In this document: positions 1,645 through 54,500 of the stretch, one piece after another | Layout: every line of letters begins with the position of its first letter | Numbering within the stretch: the stretch's first letter is position 1 | Assembly: GCF_001194135.2 (NCBI RefSeq) | Contig: NC_068991.1 | Span: 39,465,602-39,529,601, forward strand | DNA length: 64,000 bases | Origin: Octopus bimaculoides | Lineage: Eukaryota | Direction: 5' to 3' | The notes under the pieces: generated by a model | Databases searched by the model: none | Told to the model about the DNA's origin: nothing | Seen by the model: the letters and a program-made list of their open reading frames with translations, nothing else | Program-made: the position numbers and the translations under genes

Positions 1645-2040
1645 TTATTTTAAATTTTCTAAAATTTGCTCAACCATATCAAGTAGGTCATCTTTTTTCA
1701 TAGAGTAATTACTTTCTTTCCAAATACATTTCAATTTGGAAATAATTTTCTGAAAAAGTGATCCTTTTGGAACATTGCGCGCTAGCAAATCGTGTCCAGA
1801 GACAGGAAATTTTGGTGGATCCCAATGGTCAAAAGTCTTTAATACATCGTGTTTACCATTGTACTTCAGTAGTTCTTTGATATAAGATTTGATATTATGT
1901 TCTTTTCTGTCCATTAGTAACTGCTGGCAATAGCTAATGTTATCATCTGTAGCGTTCAGTGTGTTTCGTTGCTGGATAATAAATGTCCCTTGTCGGAGCT
2001 CATCAGTCGAGATTTTTACACGACTCTGGAAATTCAGAAG
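1645..2040 (-). CDS. TRNT1: TRNT1-like last coding exon (body/tail domain)
   Basis: 396 nt; ttcattacag|CTT; encodes [22 protein letters not shown]...ELLKYNGKH...[13 protein letters not shown]...[18 protein letters not shown]...ENLK*; TAA at 1647-1645. Confidence 0.93.
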   Translation of the reverse strand, partial: LLNFQSRVKISTDELRQGTFIIQQRNTLNATDDNISYCQQLLMDRKEHNIKSYIKELLKYNGKHDVLKTFDHWDPPKFPVSGHDLLARNVPKGSLFQKIISKLKCIWKESNYSMKKDDLLDMVEQILENLK

Positions 2041-10000: not shown

Positions 10001-13000
10001 AAGAGAGCTGCATAAGCAGTACATACAACCATTTTAGTTAGCAAGGAAGTCTTTGCATACTTATTGAACATCCAAGAAATTGAAGAAAAATCTTCCTCAA
10101 ACACCAGCCTACAGTCTTCAAAATAGTTTATACTAATGTTGAATATAATGTCAGGAAAGCAGGCAGGAAAGTCAGAGCTAAAATACTGGTCAAACAATAA
10201 ATTTTCAGTGAAAATATTTCCCTCAGCAAGTGTGAACACTTAAGAGACTGACAGAAGCTAAAACTCCACACAAAGTGGCCTTTAAACCATTACAGAAGGT
10301 AACTAGTGTCTTATAAAGTTTTCATGATACACAAACTCCACTAAACACACATACAATAACATTTACAAATAATCCATAAAACTAGGGGACTTTATAGAAA
10401 AAAAGTAAAAAAAAAAAAAATACAATGACTGTTACAATCACAATGACAGAACAGGAGGTACCGTTATTGCCTTTATCAATGTCACAGGTTTATATCAAAT
10501 ACATTTAACATTAAATATTTTGCATCATCATTTAATATCTCTCCCATGCTAGCAATGGGTTGGATGGTTTGACAGTAACTGGTAAGTTAGAGACTGCACC
10601 AAGCTTCACTGTCTGCTTTGGTATGGTTTTTACAGCTGGATGCCCTTCAACCACTTTACAGAGGGGGCTAAAGAAATAAACTTTGTGAACAAGGACACCC
10701 AAAGATCTGAAAATTCTGCAATCCCTCTCTTACCCTTCTACTTCCACATCATTTCTTTATTTCTCATCTCTCTACAGTTTTATTATACTGCTGCTCCCTA
10801 CACTCTCTTTTGTATTGCCACTTACCACCTCCTCCACCTTGATTCATTCCTATTTCCATCACTTTCCCCCCAACCCAAACTGATATTCACTACTGACTAT
10901 ACCTCCAGCTGTGTTCACCATTTACTGCAGTCACCTCTATGCCAGTCTCTAATCATCTGTTACTCCTCTTTCGTACTCGTGAACTTATCAACTCTTCCTG
11001 TCTCTTTTCTCTGTTATATTAAATTTGTTTGTACCTTGAGGGTACACCCCAATACCTCATAACCACCATATGTTCTCTCTTTCCAGTTCGGGTAGCCTAG
11101 TATCATCACTACAAAAAAGACACCTGAAGAACCTGTATCTGTCCCTCTATCATACTTTAGTCTCTTAACACCTGGCACAAAGCCACCTCCCTCAATATTA
11201 CACCTCCACTAAATCAAGGAGCCTTGTCTTGTGAGTTACATGGTGAGTTACTAGTGTCTGGCATTAGAAAGGGCATCTAGCCATAGAAACCATGCCAAAG
11301 AAGACAGAAAGTGGGTAGATCAACTACCCACTTTCTTGGTTTTAGATTTTAAACAACTTTTGAAGGAGTTTTTCTTAACTAATTGCTTCAATGATTCCAA
11401 TTGATTGGAGTTATTCAACTCAGTATTAATACAAGTATGAGACCTTCACCTTCTCACTCAACTATATAGTTGATATACATCATTATATTCTCTTTATATA
11501 TAGATCACTCTCAGTCTTATTAAATGAGCAGAATATGATCTGCTGAGGCAGTTTAACGGCAATGAAACATGTCTGTTGCTTTAACCATTGAAAGACTAGT
11601 TTCCAAAACTTTTCAATTAGCATAATCTTTCGGAGTTATCTCCCTTGCTTACTGTTTAAAAAAAATATTTTTTAAACATACACAGAAACAGTGTTTCTTC
11701 ACTAATTGCATAGAAAATCTTCATTAGTCAAAGTTTTTCAATACATTATATTACATAGGTGAGACTGTACTGTGTCTGTATAGAGAATTTTTCCTGAAAT
11801 ATATTCATGCAGCCCTAGTTTTGATATACTTGACAAAAGCCAAGCAAATATATGAAGCCTTGTAATGTAAAACCTGCCAAAAGAGTTGAAACAGTAATAT
11901 ATTGTACAGCAGACAAATGTTTTTACCACTCAGTGAATCTGGAACTGAATACTGGCTTAATAAGCTGGTGAAGATAATCAAAACCTTATCTAATCATTCT
12001 GTTTTGTATCTAATTTTCAATCTAATACTAGTAAAATGATTTTGAAATGTTTAGTGGGGTTCATTAAAACTAGAGACCTTTCTACTGTTAATCACACTGT
12101 GAATTCAGAAATATATCTTGTTTTTAGCTGTCAAATGCCTTGCATAGTTTGTCAATAAAAGCTACAGAGGAATTAAAAGAAGCGGTGATAGTAGGAGTGA
12201 CTACATATGTCTTAAATGAAGTAACTTGTTGGGAGTAACTTACCTCGTTGTTTGTTTCTAACAATGCAGTAATTAAAGTTATTGGTGATGGTGACAGTTG
12301 TTGGCAATTATCACATACTTTTTGGAATTCGTTAATATTACTTGTCTTGGGCAATCCTGAAAAAGATGGGGTAAAAAATACATAAAAGGAAATTAAATAA
12401 AATAAAGAAAAAATTTTGACATAAATTTGACTTATTTTTTTTTGTAATGTTTATCTCTATTAGTTTTGAAGCTTTTATGAGGAGAGAGATTTCTGACTTA
12501 TAGTGGCTACTCTTATGAACTACAGATAGAAATTAGTGCAAAGTGAAAAAACAAAAACAAAGGCATTTTATTGGATATATATATACTACTATTCTAGTTC
12601 TTAACTCTTGCTTAGATAAACAACATATTTTTCTAGTTAATATTATGCATTGTAAATTTATTACTGACAGGAAAATGATACAGCAATGCCCACCAAGTTG
12701 TGAATTTTGATAAATCATGAACCTTCACTCTTTAACATTTAAACTGGCTATATCAGGCCCAAATATTCTACATGTTTTAGGCTCAAGCTGGCTAGATCTA
12801 GCCTCTTACACCTACTCTATAATATCATTCTAGAAATATACAATCAATCATTGAAATCTTGAAGCTACAAGATAATGCATGATTAATTCAAAGCAAGGTG
12901 AATAAAAAAGCATTAAATTCAACAGAATAAACTGAACGCTAAAGGGTTAAAAGTAACTCTAAGTATATAACTAAGAAACCCCTGTCAGCTGTGCTCAAGT

Positions 13001-14171
13001 AGATCTATGTCAAGTCAATAATAAAGGAATAACATAAAGGTACAGTACCTTGGATATGCCCTGACCCAGTCTAACCTGAAAATGCATCACCCAATCTGTC
13101 ATGAAGATGTAAACAAACCAACACTGGTCATCAAACAGTGAGGGGACAAACACAAAGACATGCACATGTATATAAGTGCAGGTATGGCTGTGTGTTAAGC
13201 AGCTTGATTCCCAACCACATGGTTCAGGGTTCAGTATGTGGCACCTTGGGTGTTTTCTACTATAGCCTTGGGCTGACCAAAACCTTGTGAGTGGATGTGG
13301 TAGATGGAAACTGAAAGAAGCCCATCATATATATGTGTGCATGTGTGTGTGTCTTTGTGTTGTGTTTGTCCCCGCTCCCACTGCTTGATTACTATTGCAG
13401 CTATGTTTACATCTCTGTAACTTAGAAGTTCAGCAAAAGAGACTGATAGAATAATTGTCAGGCTTTAAAAAAGTAAGTACTGAGGTCAATACATTCGACT
13501 AAAAATTCTTCAAGGCAGTGTCCCACCATGGTCACAGTCTAATGACTGGAACAAATAAAAGATATAAACACACACACACACACATGCACACAATAGACTT
13601 CCACAGTTTCCAGCTACCAAATTCACCCACTAGGCATTGGTTGGCTCAGGGCTAGAGTAGAAGACACTTGACCAAAGTGCCATGCAATGGAACTGAACCT
13701 AAAACCACATGGTTTGAAGTGATCTTCTTAACCACCCAGCCTTGCCTGAACCTATAAAGAATATGGGATGCTCAACTAATTTGTGCATCGTCCTACAAAT
13801 TTATAGGAAGCTGGTCCATAATATTAGAGAGATATTATTGGTTCTCAAATCAAGAGGTAAAGATAGATTAGTTTATTAGTGGAATAAGATATTAATTTAA
13901 CATAAGTTATTAATTATTGTGTAGGATGTGTTATGAAGGTTCGGTTTGTAAGTATCACTAAAATTAAAATACATGAATGCAAAACTTACCAATATAGCTA
14001 AGTATCCCCAGATGAAACATTGTGGACATCATATCAGCAGTAAGGGGACCATTCACAATCTTCTTTAACTCCTGCCAGATACGTTCACCAGAAACATCTG
14101 GAAAAGAAGGATGCTCAAGTGAAATTGATGTCATGTAAGTCTAATAACTTGCTTAAATTTTGTTTCTTTCC

Positions 14172-23200: not shown

Positions 23201-24088
23201 GAAAGGAAAGATAAATGCCAATACAGCTTGGCACCAGTTGAGAGAACTGGAGCAATTTGAAATAAAGTGTCTTGCCCAAGAACACAACACACAGCCTGGT
23301 CAAGGAATCAAACTCACTACCTTATGATAGTGAGCCCGATGCTCTAACCACTGAGCCGTGTACCTTCACTACCAAAATTATCAAATAGAGAAATGATAGA
23401 TCAATATTATATAAAATACAAACTTACTAGATAGGCCATGAGCATTATTTTTGATGACAAGCAAAGTATCAGGGTTGTGCTGACTGGATGCAGAAGCAAT
23501 TTTGCCCCAAAACCTGTGGTTGTAATAAATAAGATATAAATGAAAAAAAAACCATAGGAAAATAAAAATGTAGTTAAAAGTGCAATAAAACATAGAGAAT
23601 ATTTATGAAATTTAAAGATCTCTATAGAACTATATCTTCACCATTATTATTGTTTTAACATCTACATTTTCATGCTTCCCTATCAGTGACACTTGCTTAC
23701 AATTAATACATGATGCAAAGAGAAGGGGACACAAACTCACATCATCATCATTTAACATCTACTTTCCATAATGGCATGTGTTGGACAGTGTGACAGGAAC
23801 TGGACAGCTGGGAAGCTGCCCAGGTTCAAATTGTCTATTTTGGCAGGGTTTATGCAGCTGCTCTCATCAATATGCATCACATGACCATACCAGTGCATAT
23901 ACATACATACACAATGAGCTTCTATCAGTTTCTGTCTACCAAATTCACTCACAAGGCTTTGGCCATCTTGAGGCTATAGTAGAAGACATTTGTCCAAAGT
24001 GCTATGCAATGGGATTGAACCCAAAACCATACAGTTGGGAAGTGATCTACTCAACCACGCAGCCACCATATGTACATACATACATATA

Positions 24089-30100: not shown

Positions 30101-33100
30101 TCCTCACTAGTACTCAAGTGTGAAACCATTCCCAGGAATGTTTCTAGACTCCTGAAGAAATCTGGCCTTCCAGCCCCTGTTGGGGCATAAACAGTCAGCA
30201 GTCTAAAGGCGCCACCTTTGCTGCCATTCATATCCAGAACTATTACCTTGCTGTCTGGGTCCAAGAAGACTGCCTGTACCTTGAGATCTAAGGATTTCTG
30301 GAATAGCATTACTACACTGTCACCTGGCCTTTACAGACTACAAGAGGAGAATATCTTGTAGTCTTTGAAAATGGATGCTAAAGAATGCTTCCTGAAAATT
30401 CTGGTCTCTCATTAATGTTGGTCATATCTAAATCAAGTGACCAGAGATTGTTGAGCAAGTGACTTTGCTTCCAAGCTGACCCCAGGCCACACACATTCAC
30501 ACACCCCACCCTAAGCAGTCATGCTAGTTGGAGAAAGAAAAAAAAAGAGGTCACTCACCTTAATTTTTGAGAAGCCCAGATGTTCTGGCTTCTCTACTGG
30601 TGAATGTTTGCTAAAAGGCTCTTCTAAAAACCTTTCATCTATTGTTTTCCTAAAAGTTCTAACACTGTTGTCTTGATTATATGTTTGTAATAATAATAGT
30701 GGTAAAACATAAAAAATCTACACTATAGATTTTTCAAATTACTTTCATACATATACCATGATCGAGTTTATATTTTTATAATTATTAAAATTTATTTAAG
30801 TTTCCATTTCAGTGAAATTATGGTCTATGTCCTTAAATTAGTGGTAATACTTTATTATTTATACATGATGATGATCACAGAGTAGTGATAGAGTGTAACT
30901 GTAGCATTACAAACACACACACACCTCTATTAAATCGTACTATAGTGATGGTTCAGTTATTTCATGTTTTATATTCTAACTACTCTGAAGTAAGCTAAAA
31001 TTTTGACATTGCCAACTTAAACAAGGGAGACAATCCAGAACTATTTGAGATAACTCAGCTCTTTGAAGGCTGATCTGTGCACATTGTGTGTGTGTGTGTG
31101 TGTGTGTAAATGTATATAAATATATAGATATACGTGTAAGTGTATGTGTAAGAAAGAAAAACATTCCTTACCGGAAGTAGCGAAGGATTCTGAGGTAATC
31201 CTCCTGGATTCTATCTTCTGGATTATCAACAAATCTCACAACTTTGCTTTTCAGGTTTTCCTGACCACTGACATAATCATATAAGACACCATCAAAGTCT
31301 GCAGAATGAAATAATAAAACAAAATTGACAAAAATAAAATGTTAATAAAATGTAATTTCCATTGTACCATTGTATTTTAACCTAGAAATCTTGTCCTTGA
31401 AAATTTAAAGTTTATTATCAATATTATAAACTCATTAATTTTTCTCAGAATATCTCATATTTTAACATTGATTAACTCAAAGCTTCTGGTGAGATAATGT
31501 TTTCAGTTAATTCTCCGAGTTGAAATTAGTTATTAAAGTGACATTAAGATGAGTTACTAAGTGTAAGAAACCACAAAAGAGTACAGCAATTGATAGAGGC
31601 TGAAGAAACCCAGGAAAAGGGAGCAAAAATGAAGCAAATGAAGTTTGTTGAATTTGAGCCAATTTATGTTAACGAATAAATCTTTATTTAATTCCACAAT
31701 GCTAAGTTTGGCTATTTAAGGTCAATGCAAGAAGGGAATATAAAAGCAAATTACTAACATATTTATTAGGAACCTAATCAGTTTAGATGGCAAAACTAAC
31801 AATAAAAAGAAACAGATAAACTATAATGTAATATAATTAGTTCAAGTTGTGTGTTATGATAGTCATTGATTGTAGTATTTACAGTGTTAGAGACATATTG
31901 CTGAAATATATTAAGTTTTAACTCAGAATTAACTAGGCCTGAAGACAAAGTTTTAGACCTACTTTCTGAGAAGAGCTCTCACACAACACACACTTCAGTT
32001 TATCTATAAGACATGTAATGTTATAATATATCAAGTTAGCAAAATTCCAGTATAAAGTTTGCATATTTTTATCTAAAATCCTCAGCCTCTGGTGGTGGGG
32101 GTGTCATCTGTGTCCAAGGAAAAGAAACATTGTCAGTGATCAGACATCAGGATGGCTGGGTTTGTCCATCTTCAATGACAACCTCACCAAATCAAAGAGA
32201 GCCTTGCTGAACAATTGGAGGTGGTGGAGCCCACTATTATACATGTAGTGCATGAAGACATCTTGTAAAGTTTTATGAGATTAGGAGAGCAGGTTCATGT
32301 CTGGTAAAACACAGAACTGTGTACTCTGTTCAAAATGTTTGATTGATAGCTCAAGCACTCAAAGGAACCCATCATGCCTAGATTCTTTTCTGATGGGAAG
32401 TTTGACCAAGAAGCTCGACAGGAGAAATAAATTGTTATGTGTTGAGCCCATAGAGGTACATTTCTGAAGTTTCTAGAGATCATGAGCAATAAGGTGATGA
32501 CATTGTCCCAAATAGCCACTTTTCTGTTGGCTATTTGGATCAATGTCATCACCAGCATTGAGGTGCTGGACACAGTGTTCAAGCCCTGGATTAAGGAGGT
32601 GGCCCAAGAAAAACTATATATATTCCAGTAAAACTTTGCTTCCTCCCATATGGTCCTCACAACTCATGAGTGGTTTGTCAACAATTTCTATGACCACGTG
32701 AACCCTAACATGTGTTCTCCTTAGCTCTAAAGACTTGAAGCCCCTGGACAACTTCATCTAAAACATCATTGAGAGGGACAACAAACATCAGTTCTATGAT
32801 GGCCATAGAGGATGTGATGAGCAACATGAATGAAAACCACCTCCACATAGCTATTTCATGATAGCACTGAGGATGTTATTGAGGCAATGAGACCAGTTTC
32901 TGTCGTAATCTGTTTCTATAAAATATCTAGTGGAATGTGCATACTATTTTTCTAAAAACATCTTGCTTTTTTTTAGTACAGTATATGTTTGTTTCAATAA
33001 ATTTATTTCAGTTTCAGTTATGTACTGCACACTGTAAAAGGCCCATTTATCAGTTCACATGATTTGTCTTTCACAATAACATACTTAGTCTGAATAGCAA

Positions 33101-42700: not shown

Positions 42701-45700
42701 ATAAGTACCAGACATAAAATGATGAAGGTTGATTTTAGTTGATATTACTCGAGCTGGGAGAATTATTAAAGGCTTCGCAATATTTCTTCTGCTACTTTAT
42801 GTTCCAAGTTCAAATTGCATCACGGTCAACTTTACCTTTCACTCTAAGGTGTTTGACTTCAGTATTATTTTTTATCGCATGTGTATCATGAGTTTATCAT
42901 GTGTGCAGAACCCAATTTCAACCAACTATTTATATGATAATTTCTAGACAGTTCTTTCAGTGATAGTGTTATAAACAGCTATTTTTGGCATGATTAGCCA
43001 GAGAGAATTTGGACTTCACTCATTATGGTGCCCTGGTTAGATTCTTTCTCAAAGCTGTTTTCACAGCTTCGTACAACTTTCATTTACAGCCTCCTCCTAC
43101 ATGTATCTGTCACTGACACACTAACAATCCAAATACCATTGACCCCTTTTTTACTCTAAACCTAGGCTATTTTTATCTTTGCATTCAAGTTCTGTGAACT
43201 GGCAGAACTATTAAAGTATTTTTTTTCAACTCTTTACTTTCTGGATAAAAATCCTGCTGGGATCAACTCTGCTTTTCATCCCTCCAATGTTGATAAATTA
43301 AAGTACCAGTCAAGTACTAGAGTTGATGGTATCAACTAATGCACCCTGCCTCCAAAATGCTTGCCTTGTGCATCTGTATCATCAGCATCAATGTGGGTGG
43401 ATTTTCCTAATAGTTATTTTCACAGTTCCATAACAACTCAGAGATGAGGAAGAATCATTGCCATACATTTTTGCCTCACTATGAAGATTTGTTTAACCAT
43501 TAATTATCTGTAATGATTTTCAACACCTGTGAATATGATGTGCATATAATTTGGTACCGTCTGTATTTCAGACCTTGTATAAAATGTAGCAATAAATGTT
43601 GTATATACACTGACATCAAATCTTGTCATAACTCATGCTACAACCTCATTGGGAGTCTATAAACTAAAGTAACCAGTCATTTACTGGATCGATGTAATTA
43701 ATCAATCCCCTCCCCTCACTATTGCAGGCTTTGAGTCTAAATCAGAAACCACTATTAGGGAAGAGAAACAGAGACACAGAGACCAGTGGCCAGGGAAGAT
43801 ATGATATCTGGTCTTATATTCAAACCTGTACCACTGAGTTCAATTTCTACCAAAGTCAGCTTTGCTTTTCATCTTTCCATAAAAGTACAACTATACAAAC
43901 TTTCAAAAAATGTGACAAAAGAAATAATTGGTTTTATACTTTACCGAGAAACATTGCATTTATGGTGAGATCTCTTTTGTTAGCATCTTGCTGCCAATAT
44001 GAATTAAGTTCTTGTGTAGCAGCTCCCTTGACAATTGCTGAATCTGTTCGAAGTGTAGAAATTTCAAAGTTTTCCTATAAACCATGAAATATAAATTGTT
44101 ATAAATGTTATTGATTTGTTTATTCTCACTGACATTTAAATCTAATATTTACATGCACATATGTAAATGCATCCATACACATGATATATCTGTACATATA
44201 TCAATAAATATGGCTACATGTGATAGGGATAGAAAACAAAACAATAGCTGGGGTTTTTTTTTCAACTCTATAAGCTCACAGATCCAACTAGGGAAGAATA
44301 AATGTAATAAACATTAATTATTTAGCATTGAAATATGGCTAATAATCTATATCTATAAACATCAATGTCTGTTTGTCTTGAAACAACATCATCATTTCCC
44401 AACAAATCTTTATCAAATTTTGCAGGGAGATCCATATGCAATCCAGAATTATGTATGAACAAAGCATCCCAAGTTTGAGGTCCCCTTAGGGCAAAATAGG
44501 GATAAATCAAGAAAAGTGAAAATTGTAGAGATACTGCAAACTGTAATAGAGTAGGAGTGATAGTGCAAAGCAGAGAAATGCCAGTTTGTCACATCAAAAT
44601 GTGGTTTTTCTTTCTCTAATTGGTCTTTCAATAATCTCCCACATTGTCTCACACACACACTTATACACAAACACATATGGAAAGCTGTTGTCATCAAATT
44701 TTCATGTTCAAAAGTAATATCTTTGTAAAGTTAATACATGGTCTCAAATACCATGGGAGCAGAAAGTAATTTATTCTTTCATTGTCTCTCACTAAATTTG
44801 TTTCTGTTTCTAAAATATTCAGGATTCATATTCTACAAACCAAACTGTTAACTTATTTAATGTTTGAATATTTTACAAGCCTAATGGCTTAAACATGAAA
44901 CAGGAAACATATTTTCTATCTGTCATGGAATTTGGAACCACAAACTAACTTTCTGAAAATGTGATTTCTTTTAAAGAGGAATTCTTCATAATGAATGTGT
45001 TCCAATATATAGTCTTTATAAGGCTGCAAGCTAGTAGAATGGTTAGCATGTCAGGCTAAATGCTTAGTGGCATGTTCTGAGTTTAAATTCCGTCATGGTT
45101 GACTTTATCTTTCATCCTTTCAGGGTTGATGAAATAAGTACCAGTTGGGTACTTGGGTCAATGTAATCAACTTACCCCTCCCTCTAAATTGCTGGCCTTT
45201 ACCAAAATTTGAAATCATTATTTACATTCTTTGTATATTTTGTGTGAAATATAATTAGCTCATGGTATTGTTACACATACTGATGGAATATTTGATACTT
45301 GTGCTAAAAATACCATGGTCCACTCTCATTCTAGGACCTCAAAACAGTTGTTTGATATACCTGTGTAACAAACCATAAAGCTTGCCAGAGACAATGCAAA
45401 CTGGAACAGTGTCTTGAGAAAAACAGTAGTTTTGTGTAGCTTGAAAGCAAGATGAAAGTTCCTTTGTTATCATTTTTATGCCTGTTCATCATCCAATTTT
45501 CAGCAACTTTGGCAAAATCATCAGTACAACATGATAAAAAAACATACTTTGTCAAGCACAAGAGTTAAAAAAAACCCATCTAGATTTAACCTCACTCATA
45601 TACAGCCAAGCATAGATTTTCATTGAAAATACCCTACATTCTATGGCAGGTAAGGATTTTGATCAGGGTAAACCATCACCTCCAGAAGCACTGCAGTCAC

Positions 45701-48700
45701 AAATCAGTTAAGAGTTTCCTCAGGTAACCAGCTATAACAATCAACAACTGGAATAGCAGGTCTACTAAAATGAATTACTCTTGGTTTGATACATAAAAAG
45801 CAATTAGTGACATCTGGTATGGGAGAAATTATTTTCCTTGATACTTATGATGGAACAGGTAAAACCTTTGATCAATCAAATTTTAATAAAATTTCATTCA
45901 CTCAAGTAGATTGCTATTGTTGTATTGCAGTGGCCTCATTTGAAATTGCTGCAACTTTACTCACAGGGACAGGACTGCTTGTTCTGCTTTGAAACTGCCA
46001 CTCAACATTGCACACAATAACAGTCTTGTATGCAATATTTACAAAGGATCAGGCAGCAAGCTGGCAGAATCATTAGCATACTAGGCAAAATGGTTTAGCA
46101 GCATTTTATCTGTCTTTACATTCTGAATAAAAATTCTGCCAAGGTCGATTTTGCTTTTCATCATTTCAGGGTCAGTAAAATAAGTACCAGTTGAGCATTG
46201 GGGGTTGATGTAATTGACTTACCCACTCCCCTGAAATTGCTGGCCCTGTGCCAAAATTTGTAATCAATATTTACAAAGGATCTGGACAAGCAGAGGTTGT
46301 GAAGTAAGCCAAACTGACAGTATGTGATGAGAGCATATTGTCTAAACGACTTGCACCTGAGGTTCTTGGTGGCACCTTAAAAGATCTCAGAGTTGACATG
46401 AACATCATGGGTGGAGTCACACAATCTTGTTCTCAGGCAATTTCAATCAAACACTGTCAGTCATCCCAAAAGTACACCTACAAATGAAACTGGGAGCACA
46501 CCTCAAAGAAATTTATGTTTGAAGACTAGAGAAAAGTTTGTCTTTCTACCAACATGAGAGTTGCACTTGATAGAAATGTCACACCAGCCAAATTTGCTCA
46601 AATTTCATTTCACTTGAGGTCGTGAAGAGGGAGGGGGATGATCAGCTACCATGTGGCACTGAGAGCAGAGATGTAAAAAAAAAGAAAAAAAAAGAAGAAA
46701 AAAAAGAAACAAAAGAATACAAAGCAAAAGAACAAACAAAAACTGAAGAACAATCAACAAATCTCAAGAAATACTACTGAAAGTTTATTGTATTTATGAT
46801 TCTCAAAGAATTATATAAACCATGAGAGGCTTTCTGAATGTGCAATCCCCAAAATAACTACCATATGAGTTAAATCATTTCAATTTGACAAAAATGTTTC
46901 TATTTATTTGGTACCTGTGTAATGCTGGGTATCTCTGACGGTAAATATACCTGAGGAAATATGAATAGATTAATAGTAGATAAGAAATGATATCTAGACA
47001 TACTCTATAGGACAAAAGGCTAATTGCATAGGTAACATATAAGGAGGTTGTCTATCATGGTATATAATCCCATGACTTCCTCTTCGAAGGTAATAATTGG
47101 TGCCCAGTGGAGACAGAATTCCAAAGGGTCTGCCTTTCACCATTGATTTACTATTAGTTTATATGGACTGACATAGTTTAAAAGATAGTGCCAACCCATG
47201 AGACAAAATTTTCTTTCCCCAGTCACCCACTAAAACACAGGAAAGGGGCCAATCTGATACATCAACACATATGCACATCAATCCAAACTTGAACCATCAT
47301 CTCCAATTAACATACATGTAAACCACAAAATTTAATCTTCTCTGAGACACACATTTCTCAATTCCTATCCCTAACCTATCCCTACTCTCCAGCCTACACA
47401 TTTATAATCCAACTTAACTCAAGAATATGTTTGCAAGACATCCAGTAACTCTGACTGAAAACCTTTTTTGCACATCTTTTGGCCGTATTTGGCTCATGAG
47501 TTTGATTCCTGCCAGTGCATTATGTCCTTGAGCAAGACACTTTATTTCACATTGCTTCAGTCCACTCAGTTGGCAAAAATGAGTAGTACCTGTATTTCAA
47601 AGAGCCATCCTTATCACATTCTGTGTTATGCTGAATATCTCCCTGAGAGCTATGTTAAAGGTATGTATGTCAGTGGAGTGCTCAGTTACTTGCACATTAA
47701 TTTCACAAGCAGTCTGCTTTGTCGATCAGATCAACTGAAACCCTCATCCTCATAACTGATGGAGTGCAAGTTTGCTTTTTTTCTGCTCATCATGCACTGA
47801 GGACATCTATTTACTCTCTACTTTCTCTAAACTTATCATCCTCAATGACTTTAATACATAAAAGCCTTCTTTACTCTCACATACCACCCACACTGATGTG
47901 GATGGCACATGCTGAATTCTTTGCCATTTCCAAACTGCATCATTTACAACCTCCTCATATTTGTATCTGTCACTGATACACTGATAATCCAAATGTCAAT
48001 GATCCCTTTCTTACTCTAAACCCAGGCTATTTTTATCTTTGTATCCAAGTCCTGTGAGCTGGCAGACATCGTTAAAGTACTTTTTTAAAAACTCTTTACT
48101 TTCTGGATAAAAATCCTGCTGGGATCAACCTTGCGCTTCATCTCTCTGATGTTGATAAATTAAAGTACCAATCGAGTACTAGAGCCAATGGTATCAGCTA
48201 GTGCCCTACCTTCCAAAATGATAGCTTTGTGTTAAAACAATAATTATTTCTGCATTCATTGGATCAATCAATGCTCTTCCTACCACACAGCTTAACCTCA
48301 TTTCTCATATAATCTGCTACTTCAAGTCAACTTGTCCAAGCTCCTGTGATAACAACCCTCGGAAGGAAACAGCTTACTCACCGATTCTTTTGAAGCAATG
48401 AAAAGAGTGAGAATCATTCCACTATCTTCAAACTGTAAGTTGTAAAAGTAACTCTTACTTTCATTCAACTCCTCTCTCTTTTTCTCTCTACAGCAATCTT
48501 TTTTAAGCATTGACTCAACAAAGTTGGCTACACCTGTCCAATTTTCTACACAATGGTACTGAACCCAAAACCATGAGGTTGGGGAAACAAACTTCTTAAC
48601 CACACAGCCATGCCTTCAACAGATAGACTGTCAAATTGTTTCTCTGTGCAGACTCCATCTGCCTCTCATATCTTGAATCACTAGTTTTCTGATATACTGC

Positions 48701-49925
48701 TGCCTTGTTGCAGCAAGTACAGTTGGAGCTCTCTCTGATACACACTCTATCAACCCTGGAGCCTTTATGTGGTGGCTTGACCAGCTGAAAATAACACTCA
48801 ACTGAAAACTGACACTTGACCAATTCTGTAACATGTATCTTTTACTTGTTTCAGTCATTAGACTGTGGTCATACTGGGGAACTGCTTTGAAGAATTTTTA
48901 GTTGAATGAATTGACTCCAGGACTTATTTTTTTAAAGCCAAGTACTTATTCTATTGGTCATTTTTACCAAACCACTAAGTTATGGGGACATAAACATACC
49001 AACACTGATTGTCAAGCAGTAGTGGGGGTCAAACACAAATACAAAGACACACACACATACACACTCATAATTGTCACTAATTGTGACTGAGGGTGCTGTT
49101 TATATTAATATATATTTAAATATATATATATATACAACAGGGTTCTTTCAACTTCCATTTCTGATATCCACTCACAATAGTAGAAGACACTTGCTCAAGG
49201 TGCCATACAGTAGGACTGAACCCAGAATCATGTGATAGGGAAGCAAACTTCTTACCACATAGCCATGCCTGCACCTATATGTTAAACAATCAATCAGAGA
49301 TTGCCAGTCCTGTGATATAAGATAAAATGAAGAAAGAATTAGAAGAAAATAGATTTTTTCTCCAGGTCTCATGAAGAATCATTATTGAGAATGGTGGTGG
49401 GTGGGGTAGAAGGAAGGAAGGAGGTGAGTTGGTAAAGAAAATGAATAGATATCAATATTAGAAATATAGAACTGATTGGAGACTTATAAGTTGTAGGATG
49501 CCCAGCAGCTAAGTGACAAATTAGCTGCCTTAACCTAATGGAGAAATAAGGAGTCAATTATTGGTCATTTTGTGGCCAAAGATATCCACTAATTGGTGAT
49601 TGATCAGGTCTATTGAGTTTGGGTATAAGGGAGAATTAGTGGGAAGGGGTTGCAATGCTGGCCCTTAAACCAAGATCTTCATTAAAGTGCAAATACTGAT
49701 GAATTAGTCTGCTAGGAATTTACTGCCTACTCAACACCATTTGTCTAGATTAGTGGTGCAAGCAAGGCAATGTGGTTCAGAAGTTCACTTCCCACCATGT
49801 GGTTTTGGGTTCAGTCCTACTGCATGGTACCTTAAACAAGTATCTTTCTTTGGCCTTAGGTTGATCAAATCCTTGTGAGTGAATATGTTAGTCAGAAACT
49901 GAAAGAAGCCCATTGTACATACAAA

Positions 49926-49978
<53 letters not shown>

Positions 49979-51555
49979 ATATGTGTATGTGTCTATTTGT
50001 TTACATCTGTGTGCTAGGACAGTTGCTGTGAGTGGTGCTGTATCATTTCTCCTGTCAATAACTTGTTTACTTGTTTCATGCCTCCATAGATGTATGGAAT
50101 AAAAAATCTCTTACTTGAAAATCAATTAAAAGTTAGTGATAGGAAAAGTATCCAGCTATAGTACAATGCTTCAATATCATCATCATCATCATCATCGTTT
50201 AATGTCCGCTTTCCATGCTAGCATGGGCTGGACGATTTGACTGAGGACTGGTGAAACCAGATGGCTACACCAGGCTCCAATCTGATTTGGCAGAGTTTCT
50301 ACAGCTGGATGCCCTTCCTAACGCCAATCACTCAGAGAGTGTAGTGGGTGCTTTTATGTGTCACCCGCACGAAGGCCAGTCAGGCGGCACTGGTAACGGC
50401 CACGCTCAAAATGGTGCATTCTATGTGCCACCTGCACAAGAGCTAGCCCAGGGGCACCGGCAACAATCTCGCTCGAAAAATTTCATGTGTCACTCGCACA
50501 AGAGCCAGCCCAGGGGCACCNNNNNNNNNNNNNNNNNNNNNNNNNNNNNNNNNNNNNNNNNNNNNNNNNNNNNNNNNNNNNNNNNNNNNNNNNNNNNNNN
50601 NNNNNNNNNNNNNNNNNNNNNNNNNNNNNNNNNNNNNNNNNNNNNNNNNNNNNNNNNNNNNNNNNNNNNNNNNNNNNNNNNNNNNNNNNNNNNNNNNNNN
50701 NNNNNNNNNNNNNNNNNNNNNNNNNNNNNNNNNNNNNNNNNNNNNNNNNNNNNNNNNNNNNNNNNNNNNNNNNNNNNNNNNNNNNNNNNNNNNNNNNNNN
50801 NNNNNNNNNNNNNNNNNNNNNNNNNNNNNNNNNNNNNNNNNNNNNNNNNNNNNNNNNNNNNNNNNNNNNNNNNNNNNNNNNNNNNNNNNNNNNNNNNNNN
50901 NNNNNNNNNNNNNNNNNNNNNNNNNNNNNNNNNNNNNNNNNNNNNNNNNNNNNNNNNNNNNNNNNNNNNNNNNNNNNNNNNNNNNNNNNNNNNNNNNNNN
51001 NNNNNNNNNNNGAGTTTAGTGTCCAATTTAACTCGATTTCGATTTCACTTGCCTCAACAGGTCTTCGCAAGTGGAGTTTAGTGTCCAATTTAACTCGATT
51101 TCGATTTCACTTGCCTCAACAGGTCTTCGCAAGTGGAGTTATATATAAATATATGTCTTTTATCTTTTACTTGTTTCAGTCATTTGACTGTGGCCATGCT
51201 GGGGCACTGCCTTGAAGGATTTTAGTTGAACAAGTCAACCCCAGGCCTTATTTTTTTAAAGCCTCATACTTATTCTATTGGGATTTTTTTTTGCCAAACT
51301 GTTAAGTTACAGGTGTGTAAAAACATCAACACTGGTTGTCAAACGGTGGTAGGGGGAAAACACACAGACACACACACACATATATGATGGACTTCTTTTC
51401 AGTTTGTGTGCCAAATCCACTCAAGGCTTTGGTTGGTCTGAAGCTTTAGTAGAAGACACATGCTCAAGATGCCATGCAGTGGGACTGAACTTGGAACCAT
51501 GTGGTTGAGAAGCAAGCTTCTTACCACACAGCCATGCGTGTGCCTATATGTACAG

Positions 51556-51599
<44 letters not shown>

Positions 51600-53446
51600 G
51601 TGAAACCATTGGTACGTAGGTAATCGTTTTATATATATATATATANNNNNNNNNNNNNNNNNNNNNNNNNNNNNNNNNNNNNNNNNNNNNNNNNNNNNNN
51701 NNNNNNNNNNNNNNNNNNNNNNNNNNNNNNNNNNNNNNNNNNNNNNNNNNNNNNNNNNNNNNNNNNNNNNNNNNNNNNNNNNNNNNNNNNNNNNNNNNNN
51801 NNNNNNNNNNNNNNNNNNNNNNNNNNNNNNNNNNNNNNNNNNNNNNNNNNNNNNNNNNNNNNNNNNNNNNNNNNNNNNNNNNNNNNNNNNNNNNNNNNNN
51901 NNNNNNNNNNNNNNNNNNNNNNNNNNNNNNNNNNNNNNNNNNNATTTTTATATGGTAAATTCTAAAAATTTTTGGGGGGATGTAAGTGTAAATATTCCAA
52001 GACGTGCTGGTTTATGGCTGAGACCTAAATTGCAGGTAACCTTTCAACTTTTCCTGAAATGAGATGCCAAAATGCAGCTGCAATGAATGCCATGAGTGGC
52101 AGTCACAAACAATTGTCATGAACACTGACATGCACGTGCATCTTGTGGAGGTTATGGGTATAAAAATCAACTTGAACCATGTTTCTGGCATTAATAATTT
52201 GGACACATCAGGTATGACCCGGTTGTCAGCAGTGCAGAGAGAACAAGCTATTGGCTGATTGCAAGCAGGACAGCATGCCCTGGTTGTTATGAAAGTTTAT
52301 AATGTCCTTGTCAGCACCATCTATTGCCTGGAACAGCGATACAACAACACCAGCAGGACTGCAGACTGTGCCTGCAGAGGGCACCCTTGGGTGACCACGC
52401 CCAGGCAGGACTGCTTCATCCACCTGCTGTGATCACTTCAGTCTGGCCAGCATGACAGCTCGTGAGACCATTGACACTGGACAGCGACCCATCAGTGATG
52501 ACACAGTATGATGTCAACTGGTTGCCAACAACCTGCGTTGCTGTCGTCCTGCTCAAGGGCCTGTCCTCATCACCCACCACCACCAGGCATGACTACAGTG
52601 GGCTACACAGCACCGACATTGGTGGCATCAACAATGAAGGTCGATAGTTTTCTTTGATAAGAGCCGGTGCTGCGTTTCCACCTCAGATGGCAGAGTGAGG
52701 GTGTGGCGTAGGTAGGGTGAATGCTAGAGATGCATGTGTCATGGAGAAAGATGCATGGGGTGGCCAAAGCATCATGGTTTGGGGTGCTATAGGCCTGAAT
52801 CAGAGAATTGGGCCCCATGTGTTCCAAAATGTTGGTGCAGGCAGAGGGAATGGCATTACAGTGCAGCACTATGTTGACCAGATCCTAAGACCTCACATCG
52901 TGCCCTTCTTTGTGCATCACCATAGCTATGTGTTTCAGCAGGACAATGCTCCCTCCCACATGGCCAGGGTGACCATGGACTTCCTGCATCAGCACAACAT
53001 CAGAACCATGCTGTGGCCAGCTCTCAGCCTGGATTTGAACCCAATTGAATACCTGTGGGATAAAATCCAGAGACAGCTGAACCAGGTGGTCCCAAGGCCA
53101 ACAACTCATGTTATTAACTGGAGGTAGCTTTCCTCAGGATGTGAGCACAGGTGCCAATGGCTTTTGTGAACTGCCTCATGCTCTCCATGTACCGATGGTA
53201 TATAGCTGCTTTGAACACCCAGGGTGGGCATATACTGCATTGAACATGTTACGCCCTACAATCTTGATGTACTGGATCCACCCACTACCAGAACACATGA
53301 CAACAACCCATAGACTTTGGTCAAAGTGCATCCAAGAAATCAACTTTATCAGACTTATCAAAATTTATCTCTGACAATGAAATTAAAACATATTTCACAG
53401 TGACACGTCTTGCGTTTCTTTCACAGTTCAGTGTGTATATATGCAT

Positions 53447-53482
<36 letters not shown>

Positions 53483-54500
53483 CATCATCATCATCATTTA
53501 GTGTCTGATTTTCATGCTGGCATGGGTTAGATGGTCTGACTGGAATTGGTAAGCCAGAGAGAGCTACACTAGGCTCCTGTCTGTTTTGGCTTGGTTTCTA
53601 TGACTGGATGCCTCCATAGAGTGTATAGGTTGTCTTTTACATGTCACTGGCACATGTACCTTTTATGTGCCACTGGCACAAGTGCCTTGTACATGTCACT
53701 GGTACGGGTGTCTTTTGCATGTCTCTGGCACAGGTGTCTTTCATGTGTCACTGGCACTGGGCACAATTATGATTTCACTTAGCTTGAGAAGACATGTCAA
53801 ACTAAGTGAAATCATAATTGTCTTCTCAAGCACAGCAAATTGCTAAAAGTCTCAGTCACTTGTCATTGCCTCTGTGACATTCAACATCTGAAGATCATAT
53901 TTCACCACCTCATCCCATGTCATTAATATATATCATCATCATTTATATATATATATTTGTTTAACCTATGTGAGAATGAAAAAATAGATGTAAAACGAAT
54001 GATTGAATGAAAAAGACTTTATCCTTTAATGAAATTTATCTAGACTGGACGAAGATTAAATCCTTTCAAATCAGAAAATAGAAAAACATTAACAGATTAA
54101 AGAAGTGGAAAAACAAGGTAAGTTTAATAACAGGTTATGTGAATAATGCCTTACCTTGTCATTAATTCTTACAGTGACAGTTTTATGCTTTTCGCCATTC
54201 AGGTTAATCATTCGGATACCTTCTTCAGTAAAAATTACCTTCATTTCTTCAGGGCTGGCTGTTGTAGCGAAGTCAATGTCAGTTGGCCCTATCCCCATTA
54301 AAAGATCTCGTACTGCTCCACCAGTAATCCTGAGCATATGGTTGTGTTTTTTAAACACTTTGATAAGTATTTCCAGTTGGGGAGTAAATAAAGCATGAAA
54401 TTCAGGAGAATCTATTTTTGATATTAGTAGTTCTGTCATCTTTGCTTTCTTCTCTTTTTTTTTTCTAATAGGTATGTCCTGAATTATATTTTTGAAAAAC
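1645..54500 (-). CDS. TRNT1: TRNT1-like class II tRNA nucleotidyltransferase gene, 7 coding exons, 414 aa from the ATG at 54439; a further 5' exon is possible
   Basis: Manual splice reconstruction gives 285+130+127+86+108+113+396 = 1245 nt. Intron phases are consistent (0,1,2,1,1,0), all introns are GT-AG, and there is no internal stop. The protein is collinear with human TRNT1 as I recall it: GGAVRD..DIDFAT, xRDLTINxMFL, [15 protein letters not shown], SGERIWxELKKI, ELLKY, FPVSGHD. Orthology versus paralogy is not established. Confidence 0.93.
3837..4251 (-). mobile_element. tRNA-derived SINE (family A), young full-length copy with an internal (TA)n
   Basis: tRNA-like head (gcaggagtggctgtgtggtaag...ggttcagtcccactgc), tail ...ctgaaacgagtaaagagt, CpGs retained, possible TSD ctaaat. 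Many further copies, e.g. 7460-7720, 22320-22560, 34487-34760, 48838-49272, 51165-51540, 61760-62110, 62480-62780. Confidence 0.85.
5228..5520 (-). mobile_element. tRNA-derived SINE (family C)
   Basis: Head with A/B-box-like motifs (tggcttagtagtt...gagttcgattcctggc) followed by ccttgagcaaggcactttatttcac. Related copies at about 2400-2700, 23060-23370, 47480-47780, 54975-55195 and 63620-63930. Confidence 0.75.
7900..8760 (-). mobile_element. Degenerate RTE-type LINE reverse transcriptase fragment
   Basis: ORFs 8473-8757 ([24 protein letters not shown]) and 7947-8249 (..[20 protein letters not shown]) match the LINE at 26047-28850. Confidence 0.85.
9304..9562. mobile_element. hAT (Charlie-like) MITE nested in a LINE 3' tail copy
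   Basis: TIRs cagtggttcttaa / ttaagaaccactg; 8-bp TSD atatagtg / atgtagtg with one mismatch. Confidence 0.8.
12244..12356 (-). CDS. TRNT1: TRNT1-like exon 6
   Basis: 113 nt; tctttttcag|GA...GAG|gtaagt; encodes (G)[37 protein letters not shown], which aligns without gaps to [38 protein letters not shown]. Confidence 0.9.
12729..12949. mobile_element. TTAA-ended (piggyBac-like) MITE copy
   Basis: Same internal sequence as 37803-38030 and ends in ctaaagggttaa. Other copies near 2965-3187, 3363-3472 and 34990-35250. Confidence 0.7.
13178..13566 (+). mobile_element. Family A SINE, followed by an inverted partial copy at 13591-13750
   Basis: Head gcaggtatggctgtgtgttaag..., tail aatgactggaacaaataaaagat. 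The second copy is the reverse complement of the head region. Confidence 0.8.
13990..14097 (-). CDS. TRNT1: TRNT1-like exon 5 (motif E)
   Basis: 108 nt; ccttcttttccag|AT...G|gtaagt; encodes (N)[35 protein letters not shown](G). Confidence 0.94.
14372..14855 (-). mobile_element. Young LINE-3'-end-derived element with a (GAT)n tail
   Basis: Near-identical to 50177-51140 and 58770-58969; the tail matches the 3' end of the RTE at 28850; CpGs retained. Confidence 0.8.
14924..15150 (+). mobile_element. tRNA-derived SINE (family B) with an (ATT)n tail
   Basis: ggcagcaagtgagcagaattgttacc...gttctgagctcaaattctgccaaggtc...ttcaggccttgtgcc. Copies at 5898-6085, 20720-20929, 22860-23040, 41420-41620, 45025-45215 and 46051-46264. 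Confidence 0.8.
15520..17830 (-). mobile_element. Degenerate Tx1/L1-clade LINE, RT to 3' end
   Basis: Frameshifted RT motifs [36 protein letters not shown] and [33 protein letters not shown], followed by a T-rich 3' UTR. Confidence 0.85.
19540..19855 (-). mobile_element. 5' ORF portion of an R4/Dong-like LINE, inverted
   Basis: [25 protein letters not shown] and [10 protein letters not shown] resemble N-terminal regions of R4/Dong-type ORFs (from memory). Confidence 0.6.
19861..20718 (+). mobile_element. 3' portion of an R4/Dong-like (RLE-type) LINE
   Basis: [28 protein letters not shown] knuckle [18 protein letters not shown], and the restriction-like endonuclease motif [11 protein letters not shown]; several stops. 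Confidence 0.88.
21424..21710. mobile_element. hAT-like MITE
   Basis: TIRs cagtggttatcaac / gttgagaaccact; no matching TSD. Confidence 0.65.
21711..22103. repeat. Foldback palindrome (MITE-like), about 155-bp arms with a 40-bp spacer, plus a small perfect hairpin at the left end
   Basis: 21748-21900 is the reverse complement of about 21944-22097 with scattered mismatches. 21711-21744 is tactccactccctc-caaatt-gagggagtggagta. Confidence 0.9.
23428..23513 (-). CDS. TRNT1: TRNT1-like exon 4
   Basis: 86 nt; ccacag|G...A|gtaagt; encodes (R)[28 protein letters not shown], which aligns to [29 protein letters not shown]. Confidence 0.9.
24086..24160. repeat. (TA)n microsatellite
   Basis: Direct reading. 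Others at about 4060-4090, 49928-49970 and 57420-57458; (CA)n at 14174-14210. Confidence 0.95.
24166..24922 (+). mobile_element. 5'-truncated RTE LINE 3' end (C-terminal ORF2 + 3' UTR + (GAT)n tail)
   Basis: [44 protein letters not shown]; matches 27990-28850. Confidence 0.88.
25665..28850 (+). mobile_element. Degenerate RTE-type LINE (ORF2 RT region to 3' tail), preceded by an extra 3' UTR piece
   Basis: [54 protein letters not shown] (27341) and YLG (27724); frameshifts; tail taaacgacgatgatgatg. Confidence 0.92.
29023..29243. mobile_element. Tigger/pogo-like MITE
   Basis: TA-flanked; ends cagtagtcac... / ...gagggattactg. Confidence 0.65.
29440..30650 (-). mobile_element. Degenerate Tx1-clade LINE: ORF1 end + APE endonuclease + linker
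   Basis: [11 protein letters not shown] start motif, [19 protein letters not shown]-like motif, WTWSN..SRSYL, GCIVRA. Confidence 0.82.
31172..31298 (-). CDS. TRNT1: TRNT1-like exon 3 (motifs C and D, EDYLR template)
   Basis: 127 nt; ttcattctgcag|AC...CG|gtaagg; encodes (D)[41 protein letters not shown](R). Confidence 0.95.
31882..33035 (+). mobile_element. Decayed maT/DD37D-like Tc1/mariner element
   Basis: Broken translation: ..VHEDI.., [22 protein letters not shown]...YIFQ.., HVNPNM..; possible TIRs tacagtgt../..cactgta. Confidence 0.7.
35300..36092 (-). mobile_element. RTE LINE RT fragment
   Basis: [41 protein letters not shown] resembles the RT GVRQGCLLSPTLF region. Confidence 0.8.
36095..36800 (+). 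mobile_element. RTE LINE APE endonuclease fragment, inverted relative to the adjacent RT piece
   Basis: [11 protein letters not shown] (GDWNAKVG), [23 protein letters not shown] (HNQIDYILV). Confidence 0.78.
37803..38030. mobile_element. TTAA-flanked piggyBac-like MITE, complete
   Basis: TTAA-ccctttag.../...ctaaaggg-TTAA. Confidence 0.8.
40231..40500. repeat. 26-bp tandem repeat, 10 full units plus a partial unit
   Basis: Consensus about ggcaccagcacaagtgcattttatgt with an exact 26-nt period from 40231 to 40490, embedded in a LINE-tail-derived element. Confidence 0.9.
43945..44074 (-). CDS. TRNT1: TRNT1-like exon 2 (general-base Glu, basic/acidic motif, flexible loop, motif B)
   Basis: 130 nt; tttatag|GAA...CTCG|gtaaag; encodes [43 protein letters not shown]. 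Confidence 0.93.
45390..46520 (+). mobile_element. Helitron RepHel PIF1-helicase remnant
   Basis: [13 protein letters not shown] (Walker A), [31 protein letters not shown] and IMGGVT; upstream [21 protein letters not shown]; multiple stops. Confidence 0.85.
46051..46264 (+). mobile_element. Family B SINE inserted in the Helitron remnant with an 18-bp TSD
   Basis: TSD caatatttacaaaggatc at 46033-46050 and 46265-46282. Confidence 0.92.
50177..51140 (-). mobile_element. Young LINE-3'-end-derived element spanning a gap; 62-bp tandem units at 51012-51135
   Basis: Near-identical to 14372-14855; two identical 62-mers follow the gap. Confidence 0.8.
50521..51011. other. Assembly gap (others at 4091-4100, 51646-51943 and 58970-59011)
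   Basis: Runs of N, all flanked by repeats or microsatellites. Confidence 1.
51960..53435 (+). mobile_element. Decayed Tc1-like DD34E transposon
   Basis: [14 protein letters not shown] start (ATG about 52213), [19 protein letters not shown], and FQQDNAPSH...[12 protein letters not shown] with 34 residues between D and E; right TIR ...cttgcgtttctttcacagttcagtgt. Confidence 0.9.
54155..54500 (-). CDS. TRNT1: TRNT1-like coding exon 1 (head domain, motif A with catalytic D54-x-D56)
   Basis: Encodes [14 protein letters not shown]...[30 protein letters not shown]...[17 protein letters not shown] at 54439; donor AAG|gtaagg; acceptor tttcttttctttgaatag ends at 54501. The 5' boundary is less certain than the 3' one. 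Confidence 0.92.

Follow-up and report, generated by a model that had tools for sequence, protein, structure and literature searches.

Animals are generally taken to have one TRNT1 gene that serves both the cytosol and the mitochondria (PMC4538823). In human TRNT1, each of the flexible-loop substitutions D103A, G104A and R105A leaves an enzyme that adds two C residues only (Hoffmeier et al. 2010, PMC2910056); in the case of R105A, the kcat for A addition is 77-fold lower and C addition is intact, and R105 has been modelled to form a salt bridge with E164 of the EDxxR motif (PMC2910056). Motif C has been described as a hinge that supports rearrangement (PMC7014341, PMC7730189). The a-type enzyme of the choanoflagellate Salpingoeca rosetta is a proven CC-adder that is rescued by the human loop (Erber et al. 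2020, PMC7014341), and Acanthamoeba castellanii has two CCA-adding enzymes, one CC-adding and one A-adding enzyme (PMC7947759). Here, we analyze a TRNT1 gene in a stretch of 64,000 nucleotides of the Octopus bimaculoides genome (contig NC_068991.1, positions 39,465,602 to 39,529,601; hereafter the window, in which positions are counted from the first letter). The gene is the first candidate for a eukaryotic CC-adding-type TRNT1 in Metazoa, and a CC-adding enzyme has not previously been reported for an animal. To our knowledge, bacteria, fission yeast, a choanoflagellate and an amoeba are the only organisms in which CCA addition is known to be split or partial.

The window gene is TRNT1, the class II alphaproteobacterial-type (Holozoan a-type) tRNA nucleotidyltransferase of animals. 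Searching the window by tblastn with human TRNT1, followed by exact splice mapping, placed the gene on the minus strand in seven GT-AG coding exons that encode an uninterrupted open reading frame (ORF) of 414 aa, in agreement with the uninterrupted ORF and canonical splice sites claimed in a preliminary description made from the letters of this stretch. By exact look-up the model is identical to the O. bimaculoides RefSeq protein XP_014770670.1/XP_014770671.1, named "CCA tRNA nucleotidyltransferase 1, mitochondrial", and thus matches the existing annotation. The protein contains the PolyA_pol head (PF01743, E=1.5e-32) and the RNA-binding domain (PF12627, E=2.3e-9), matches human 4X4W over residues 7-412 (E=2.6e-119) and is 46% identical to human TRNT1 by full-length BLASTP (44-47% in structure-based alignments); its AlphaFold model (pLDDT 91.3, pTM 0.82) finds its best structural match in human TRNT1 8CBM_E (TM 0.86/0.92).

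The flexible loop is encoded by coding exon 2 (43945..44074, minus strand, 130 nt, aa 96-139) together with NFE, the basic/acidic (B/A) motif R104..D106 and motif B; on the reverse complement of 43945-44074 the exon borders read ag/GAAAAC at the acceptor (...tttatag) and TTTCTCG/gtaaag at the donor. By alignment read-out the loop extends from D106 to W122 (43994..44044, minus strand), and the span 43997-44044 singled out in the preliminary description corresponds to codons D106-Y121. In the Octopus loop the canonical T-D-G-R..V..T.D has become I-V-K-G..Q..N.Y, with E117 and W122 kept and, as originally described, with the length unchanged at 17 aa from D to W. The odd loop in exon 2 is real: its translation was confirmed, is identical to the RefSeq protein, and the loop is shared by other octopods. 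The orthologues of O. vulgaris and O. sinensis have the O. bimaculoides loop with one N>D change, and the Argonauta hians orthologue has a related yet different degenerate loop, TSVIVQEASSQELSSYW; the site of the DGRbAxV consensus reads VKGAATQ in the Octopus gene and VQEASSQ in the Argonauta orthologue. The occurrence of the loop in O. vulgaris and O. sinensis, and of a degenerate loop in Argonauta, rules out an assembly error as the cause.

That animal TRNT1 loops are strongly conserved had been stated in the preliminary description, and is borne out. All 112 other bilaterian loop read-outs fit the pattern TLR[IV]D..T[DN]GR.A.V.[FYH]T.[DN]W, followed by RRD; these are the read-outs obtained for the segment from NFE to motif B among the 117 homologues left after excluding the octopod window-gene copies and P0094, and they span molluscs, nemerteans, brachiopods, arthropods, echinoderms, hemichordates and vertebrates. 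The x-G-R element is missing from five of 279 sequences with motif B context, all five of them octopod copies of the window gene, and the approximately 275 other animal TRNT1 sequences have G-R in the loop without exception and T-D-G-R-b-A-x-V in nearly all cases. The loop is also canonical in 14 of 14 additional animal TRNT1 loci that include the loop region in JGI metagenome contigs. The read-outs, the 279-sequence scan and the metagenome loci rule out that the loop is routinely variable across molluscs, in which every read-out outside the octopod window-gene copies is canonical. A tblastn search with the canonical exon 2 peptides of Octopus, Sepia and Patella matched only the divergent exon 2 in the window; it revealed no canonical alternative there, and none in the orthologous loci of O. 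vulgaris (L006) and Argonauta (L001), which are free of gaps. Those gap-free introns also rule out that a canonical exon 2 is hidden in the assembly gaps (50521-51011 and 51646-51943) of the 10,080-nt intron 1 (44075..54154, minus strand), a possibility that the preliminary description had raised.

Between Octopus and Argonauta, 8 of the 21 residues of the B/A motif and loop differ in the window gene vs 0 of 21 in a second, canonical TRNT1 copy that the same species possess (see below). R104 and D106 of the B/A motif are kept in Octopus, and both the Arg and the Asp are lost in Argonauta (Q and T; STLQTT). The ratio of nonsynonymous to synonymous substitution rates (dN/dS; pairwise NG86/YN00 throughout) is 0.69 over these 21 codons of the window gene, and in the canonical copy dN is 0 over the same segment. 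This contrast between the two copies suggests that the loop is relaxed and that its function has been lost rather than replaced by a new fixed sequence. The loop had been described as rewritten; the least constrained part of the head domain does not have a new fixed sequence and points instead to a lost loop function.

The change extends beyond the loop to a wider remodelling of the head domain that includes motif B and motif C. We considered 101 near-invariant alignment columns, defined as conserved to at least 95% in 111 non-cephalopod bilaterians. The three window-gene copies all depart at 16 of these columns vs two for octopod canonical copies, one for decapod copies, and a median of one and a maximum of five for single ordinary sequences. 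All 16 departures fall within residues 35-163, corresponding to 16 of 63 conserved columns in the head, taken as aa 1-165, vs 0 of 38 elsewhere (Fisher p=4e-4); the 38 near-invariant columns of the body and tail are thus all kept in the window gene. Seven departures lie inside the loop (T109I, D110V, G111K/Q, R112G/E, V116Q, T119x and D121Y). Elsewhere in the head, E35M and A39T flank GGAVRD, T62S and T101S are further substitutions, G86K affects an otherwise invariant glycine beside the beta-turn element (HGT>HKT), R128K in motif B is a conservative change that gives KRD in all window-gene copies and RRD in every other sequence examined, and F148V, D153N and G163D/E are in motif C and the entry to motif D. 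Octopus and Argonauta both retain motifs A, D and E (G40-D45, D54/D56, E99, E171-D172..R175, S212-W217), and R129-D130 is likewise present in the window protein. The claim that the core motifs are intact therefore stands for GGAVRD, DID, NFE, R104/D106, EDYLR and SGERIW and fails for motif B, which had been overlooked and is KRD, not RRD.

O. bimaculoides, O. vulgaris, O. sinensis and Argonauta each have a loop-divergent TRNT1 of 413-414 aa and, in the same genome, a canonical TRNT1 of 448-450 aa that could potentially add the terminal A. The second TRNT1 with a DGRH loop that the preliminary description proposed to look for in this genome is thus present (P0021 = XP_052826521.1), and the canonical copies sit on chromosomes other than that of the window gene. 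P0021 and the canonical copies P0137 and P0043 have a presequence-like N-terminal extension and the loop DIKTDGRHAKVEFTQDW. The canonical copy is a single uninterrupted ORF in O. bimaculoides (L002 10001-11353), in Argonauta (L003 10001-11347) and in a decapod-like contig from the European Nucleotide Archive (L004 10001-11347). We assign the latter contig to a decapod because its protein is 85% identical to its closest relative, P0005, a Sepia esculenta transcript that occurs in run SRR31864759, which is named by PMC11917092 in a transcriptome study of that species. In each of the three single-exon loci, a polypyrimidine-AG acceptor-like site precedes the ATG by 27-95 nt, which suggests that these copies have recruited an intron and exon in the 5' untranslated region. 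As a separate observation, the canonical cephalopod copies evolve fast (P0021, P0137, P0022 and P0043 compared with P0003-P0005), with 58-60% identity between octopods and decapods and 53-59% to other molluscs, and the octopod canonical copies carry an S>A change in the motif E region (IAGERIW).

The exon structure of the window gene is that of other mollusc TRNT1 genes. Its coding exons, all on the minus strand, are exon 1 (54155..54439; aa 1-95, with the ATG at 54439-54437, motif A GGAVRD at 40-45, DID at 54-56 and the beta-turn region NGEKHK at 81-86), exon 2 described above, exon 3 (31172..31298; motif C with F148V, D153N and G163D, and an intact motif D), exon 4 (23428..23513), exon 5 (13990..14097; intact motif E region), exon 6 (12244..12356) and exon 7 (1645..2040, including the stop; the tRNA-binding body and tail, with all near-invariant columns kept). 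They measure 285/130/127/86/108/113/396 nt with phases 0,1,2,1,1,0, and the TRNT1 exons of the limpet Patella vulgata measure 378/130/127/86/108/113/399 nt with the same phases; exon 1 is 93 nt (31 codons) shorter in the window gene, and the O. vulgaris and Argonauta orthologues share the internal exon lengths and phases with Patella. All six coding introns being present at the Patella positions and phases, retrocopy status for the window gene is ruled out. Because the canonical-looking copy consists of a single coding exon while the window gene keeps the limpet exon lengths and intron phases, the former is probably an old retrogene and the latter probably the copy of ancestral structure that diverged. 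The proposal of a neofunctionalized TRNT1 paralog was right in that there are two copies; it is the canonical copy that is intronless, and the window gene, with its ancestral exon structure, is not the derived duplicate.

By neighbor joining (413 columns, 200 bootstrap replicates), the single-exon copies of octopods and decapods cluster with 99.5% support; sister to them, on a long stem (0.34 vs 0.06), is the loop-divergent clade (100), and support for a grouping of all cephalopod sequences is weak (62.5%). No orthologue of the window gene outside Octopoda was present among the best 120 full-length matches or detected in a last-exon search of 50%-identity representatives, in which clustering could hide one, and the JGI metagenome contigs with the 14 canonical loci contained none. 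PP4R3 adjoins the window-gene orthologue in opposite orientation in O. vulgaris and Argonauta. The gene spans 12.5 kb in Argonauta (L001 10001-22465; introns of 0.45-7.3 kb) vs 53-55 kb in the two Octopus species compared (window 1645-54439 and O. vulgaris L006 10001-65073; introns of 1.6-12.6 kb).

The window gene is under purifying selection about as strong as that on the presumably essential canonical copy. Its dN/dS is 0.11-0.12 between O. bimaculoides and Argonauta, at a dS of about 1.1-1.2, and 0.22-0.26 between O. bimaculoides and O. vulgaris, compared with 0.09-0.16 for the canonical copy between Octopus and Argonauta; the Octopus and Argonauta proteins share 77% identity in the case of the window gene and 81% in that of the canonical copy. 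Within the window gene, constraint is strongest in the head outside the loop, with a dN/dS of 0.06. These ratios support the suggestion that the gene is functional and, with intact ORFs and splice sites in four species, rule out a pseudogene. In O. sinensis, an isoform X2 of 388 aa (P0122 = XP_029642677.1) has an alternative C-terminus, ...KIISIQYLV, which hints at transcript evidence and alternative 3' splicing in that species.

Met1 of the window protein lies 10 residues before the SPEF anchor, at the position of the internal Met32 of the canonical copies, and no in-frame ATG precedes it before a stop codon in the three species examined. The first 31 residues contain four K/R and four D/E in the window protein and five to eight K/R with zero to one D/E in the canonical copies. 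The layout of a dual-targeted enzyme, i.e. an N-terminal presequence and an internal start codon, is absent from the window protein, whose N-terminus is acidic and mature-like. Judged from its sequence, the window protein has no mitochondrial presequence. A mitochondrial role appears unlikely because translation begins at the counterpart of the internal Met, no in-frame ATG lies upstream and the N-terminus is acidic and mature-like; we infer a cytosolic or nuclear localization, and the word "mitochondrial" in the RefSeq name of XP_014770670.1 is probably a misnomer.

Combining the loop, selection and N-terminal data, we see an even chance that the window protein is a cytosolic or nuclear CC-adding-type enzyme in which A addition is absent or barely possible. 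The sequence features of eukaryotic CC-adders are found in it: the loop length is kept, the consensus residues T, D, G, R, V, T and D are replaced and motifs A, D and E are intact. The core inference of the preliminary description agrees with each of the computational tests made, and the CC-only idea has a direct experimental precedent in the human loop mutants and in the Salpingoeca enzyme. We propose the following scenario. A processed TRNT1 copy, consisting of one coding exon, would have arisen before octopods and decapods diverged. With its mitochondrial presequence, its internal start codon for the cytosolic form and all canonical motifs preserved, it now looks like a standard dual-targeted CCA-adding enzyme. 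The gene of ancestral structure would have survived in octopods in altered form: its start lies at the equivalent of the internal Met and the presequence is gone, as are the residues T-D-G-R..V of the loop, by which the nucleotide pocket is switched from CTP to ATP. Further head positions tied to A addition or ribose binding have changed (G86K, RRD>KRD and the three motif C residues), and the Argonauta orthologue additionally lacks the B/A Arg and Asp. Under strong purifying selection the gene has retained the metal-binding DxD, GGAVRD, E99, the nucleotide template EDxxR, motif E and the body and tail that bind tRNA. Such an enzyme is predicted to bind tRNA and to add C74 and C75 with little or no switch to ATP, leaving the terminal A to the canonical copy, whose activity is likewise deduced from its sequence. 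The fuller proposal, which we put forward more tentatively, is that this is the first animal CC-adding-type tRNA nucleotidyltransferase and that it arose by a reversal of roles, in which the retrogene took over the essential dual-targeted CCA function in coleoids, and the parent, freed to lose the presequence and the CTP-to-ATP switch, has since been maintained in octopods by strong selection for some task in the cytosol or nucleus.

Several observations weigh against the CC-adding reading and the scenario. Different phyla have different families of loops, which co-evolve with the remainder of the enzyme (PMC2910056, PMC7014341), and for this reason a novel working loop is possible as far as sequence alone can tell. 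The loop dN/dS is an estimate over 21 codons, a small sample, and K111 of Octopus adjoins the position of the lost Arg, where Argonauta has Q and no Lys. A CC-adder beside a full CCA-adding enzyme looks redundant. With 175-aa and 84-aa queries spanning exons 1-3, no transcript-derived fragment of the window gene was found in public assemblies, in which the canonical copy is present as contigs of about 2.8 kb that are too short for an intron-bearing gene and are probably transcripts; one further cluster member, P0124 (89 aa), the only one, resembles a last-exon ORF from genomic DNA, and the case for expression of the window gene comes from selection and the RefSeq models only. The argument for a retrogene origin consists of intron loss and the tree, and the single-exon copies have no poly(A) tract or target-site duplication. 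The flanks of these copies do not align beyond the coding sequence among Octopus, Argonauta and the decapod contig, and with no retrogene hallmarks left, their single origin rests on the tree and parsimony. Lastly, the neighbours of Patella TRNT1 are different and do not include PP4R3, and synteny is uninformative as to whether the window gene occupies the ancestral locus of molluscs.

The extent of the changes outside the loop (E35M, A39T, G86K, RRD>KRD in the ribose-binding motif B and the three motif C residues) could alternatively mean that the head was remodelled for a new job, i.e. other RNA substrates, an altered nucleotide preference or a role as a non-catalytic tRNA-binding or regulatory protein. 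A remodelled head that is now tightly constrained would fit a burst of change followed by a new optimum, and the apparent redundancy of a plain CC-adder points in the same direction. We nevertheless regard a new job, while possible, as rather unlikely, given that the metal-binding and CTP/ATP-templating residues are all kept (D54, D56, E99 and E171-D172..R175), that the retention of 38 of 38 near-invariant columns in the tRNA-binding part favours an ordinary substrate and ordinary chemistry, and that no evidence for another substrate was found.

It is distinctly improbable that the window protein is a full CCA-adding enzyme whose loop has moved to a new co-evolved family, with the other head changes compensating, and which serves as a cytosol-only isoenzyme after subfunctionalization of dual targeting. 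Loops that differ widely between phyla work in their own context, with no universal position (PMC7014341, PMC2910056), the loop still has its 17-aa length along with E117 and W122, compensation could come from the 16 head changes that accompany it, and the gene as a whole is strongly constrained. Within a lineage, however, working loops are conserved, and the difference at 8 of 21 positions between Octopus and Argonauta, where the canonical copy has none, does not fit; neither does the absence of a conserved basic loop residue (K111 in Octopus, Q in Argonauta), nor the loss in Argonauta of the Arg and Asp of the B/A motif, the residues by which the CC end is placed for A addition.

That the gene is an incipient pseudogene, a parent in decay since the retrocopy rendered it redundant, or else an artefact of annotation, would accord with the lack of transcript-derived fragments in public assemblies and with the loss of the presequence and of key residues, but is very unlikely in view of exactly preserved exon lengths, a dN/dS of 0.11, as low as that of the essential canonical copy, and ORFs and splice sites that have stayed intact in four species despite a synonymous divergence of about 1.1-1.2 between Octopus and Argonauta. 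Repair of mitochondrial tRNA 3' ends reportedly occurs in squid, and a specialized repair enzyme for truncated or overlapping mitochondrial tRNA 3' ends, as suggested in the preliminary description, is the least probable alternative, since the window protein starts at the equivalent of the cytosolic start with an acidic, mature-type N-terminus and no upstream in-frame ATG in three species, the presequence sits on the canonical copy, and such repair needs A addition, the activity most probably lost here.

No tRNA genes or Rfam families were found in the 64 kb. In intron 3, at 26138-27976 on the plus strand and thus antisense to the gene, broken ORFs resemble the reverse transcriptase of non-LTR retrotransposons (RVT_1 E=0.008, below the Pfam cut-off), and G+C content is higher at 24-30 kb (0.42-0.44) than elsewhere in the window. 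Four tandem arrays (24578-24766, 28498-28677, 40226-40497 and 53634-53757), two of which flank the reverse transcriptase-like region, have 66-nt and 26/52/78-nt units with a common GGCAC...GTGC core and are probably parts of one repeat family. Besides the two N runs in intron 1 there are N runs at 4091-4100 (intron 6) and at 58970-59011 (upstream of the gene). A perfect repeat of 62 nt x 2.1 at 51012-51140 abuts the first intron-1 gap and is possibly an assembly artefact, and the ORFs at 50251-51215 are not real, as they run through an N run.

The natural loss of three A-addition loop residues in a gene as constrained as the essential copy provides a ready test of the model in which the loop acts as a lever, and this test would sit in the same lineage as human TRNT1, a disease gene. 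It also raises the question what would maintain a CC-adder in a genome that already has a full enzyme. In addition, the two octopod genes would be a clear example of a retrogene that inherits the ancestral function while the parent gene diverges. In the literature searched, we found no paper linking octopus or cephalopods to CCA-adding enzymes, or TRNT1 to retrogenes.

The window protein has the same fold as canonical animal TRNT1 (human 4X4W, 1OU5 and 8CBM) and its gene shares the exon structure of mollusc TRNT1; unlike the canonical enzymes, it has no presequence, has lost the loop consensus, has KRD for RRD and departs at 16 near-invariant head positions. The three positions replaced in the human loop mutants are also replaced in the octopod gene (V, K/Q and G/E). 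The human changes are engineered single substitutions, whereas the octopod loop has drifted as a whole in a natural gene that is maintained by selection. In the bacterial CC-adders (Aquifex, Bacillus halodurans and others) the switch to A addition is disabled and C addition kept, as we propose for the octopus protein; in these enzymes the loop is deleted, whereas the octopus loop retains 17 residues.

The a-type CC-adder of Salpingoeca belongs to the same Holozoan TRNT1 lineage as the octopus protein and has the core motifs A-E, and in both proteins the loop length and the C-terminal loop residues are kept and the N-terminal DGRbAxV consensus is lost. The Salpingoeca enzyme is an assayed CC-adder, and the octopus protein is known here from sequence. 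The two differ in their partners, an A-adding e-type enzyme in Salpingoeca and a full canonical a-type enzyme in octopus; in the additional departures of the octopus protein in motif B, in motif C and next to the beta-turn; and in their N-termini, the Salpingoeca a-type enzyme being predicted to have a mitochondrial targeting sequence (PMC4538823) that the octopus protein lacks. The CC-adder of Schizosaccharomyces pombe and the Acanthamoeba castellanii set (PMC7014341, PMC7947759) are, as in octopods, eukaryotic duplicates with a degenerate loop, and the S. pombe enzyme also has a degenerate B/A motif, like that of Argonauta. These enzymes are of e-type or other lineages and are from non-animals, and in none of them have a parent gene and a retrogene swapped roles. 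In Acanthamoeba, full CCA-adding enzymes and a CC-adder occur side by side, which in that respect provides a precedent for the octopus pair (PMC7947759).

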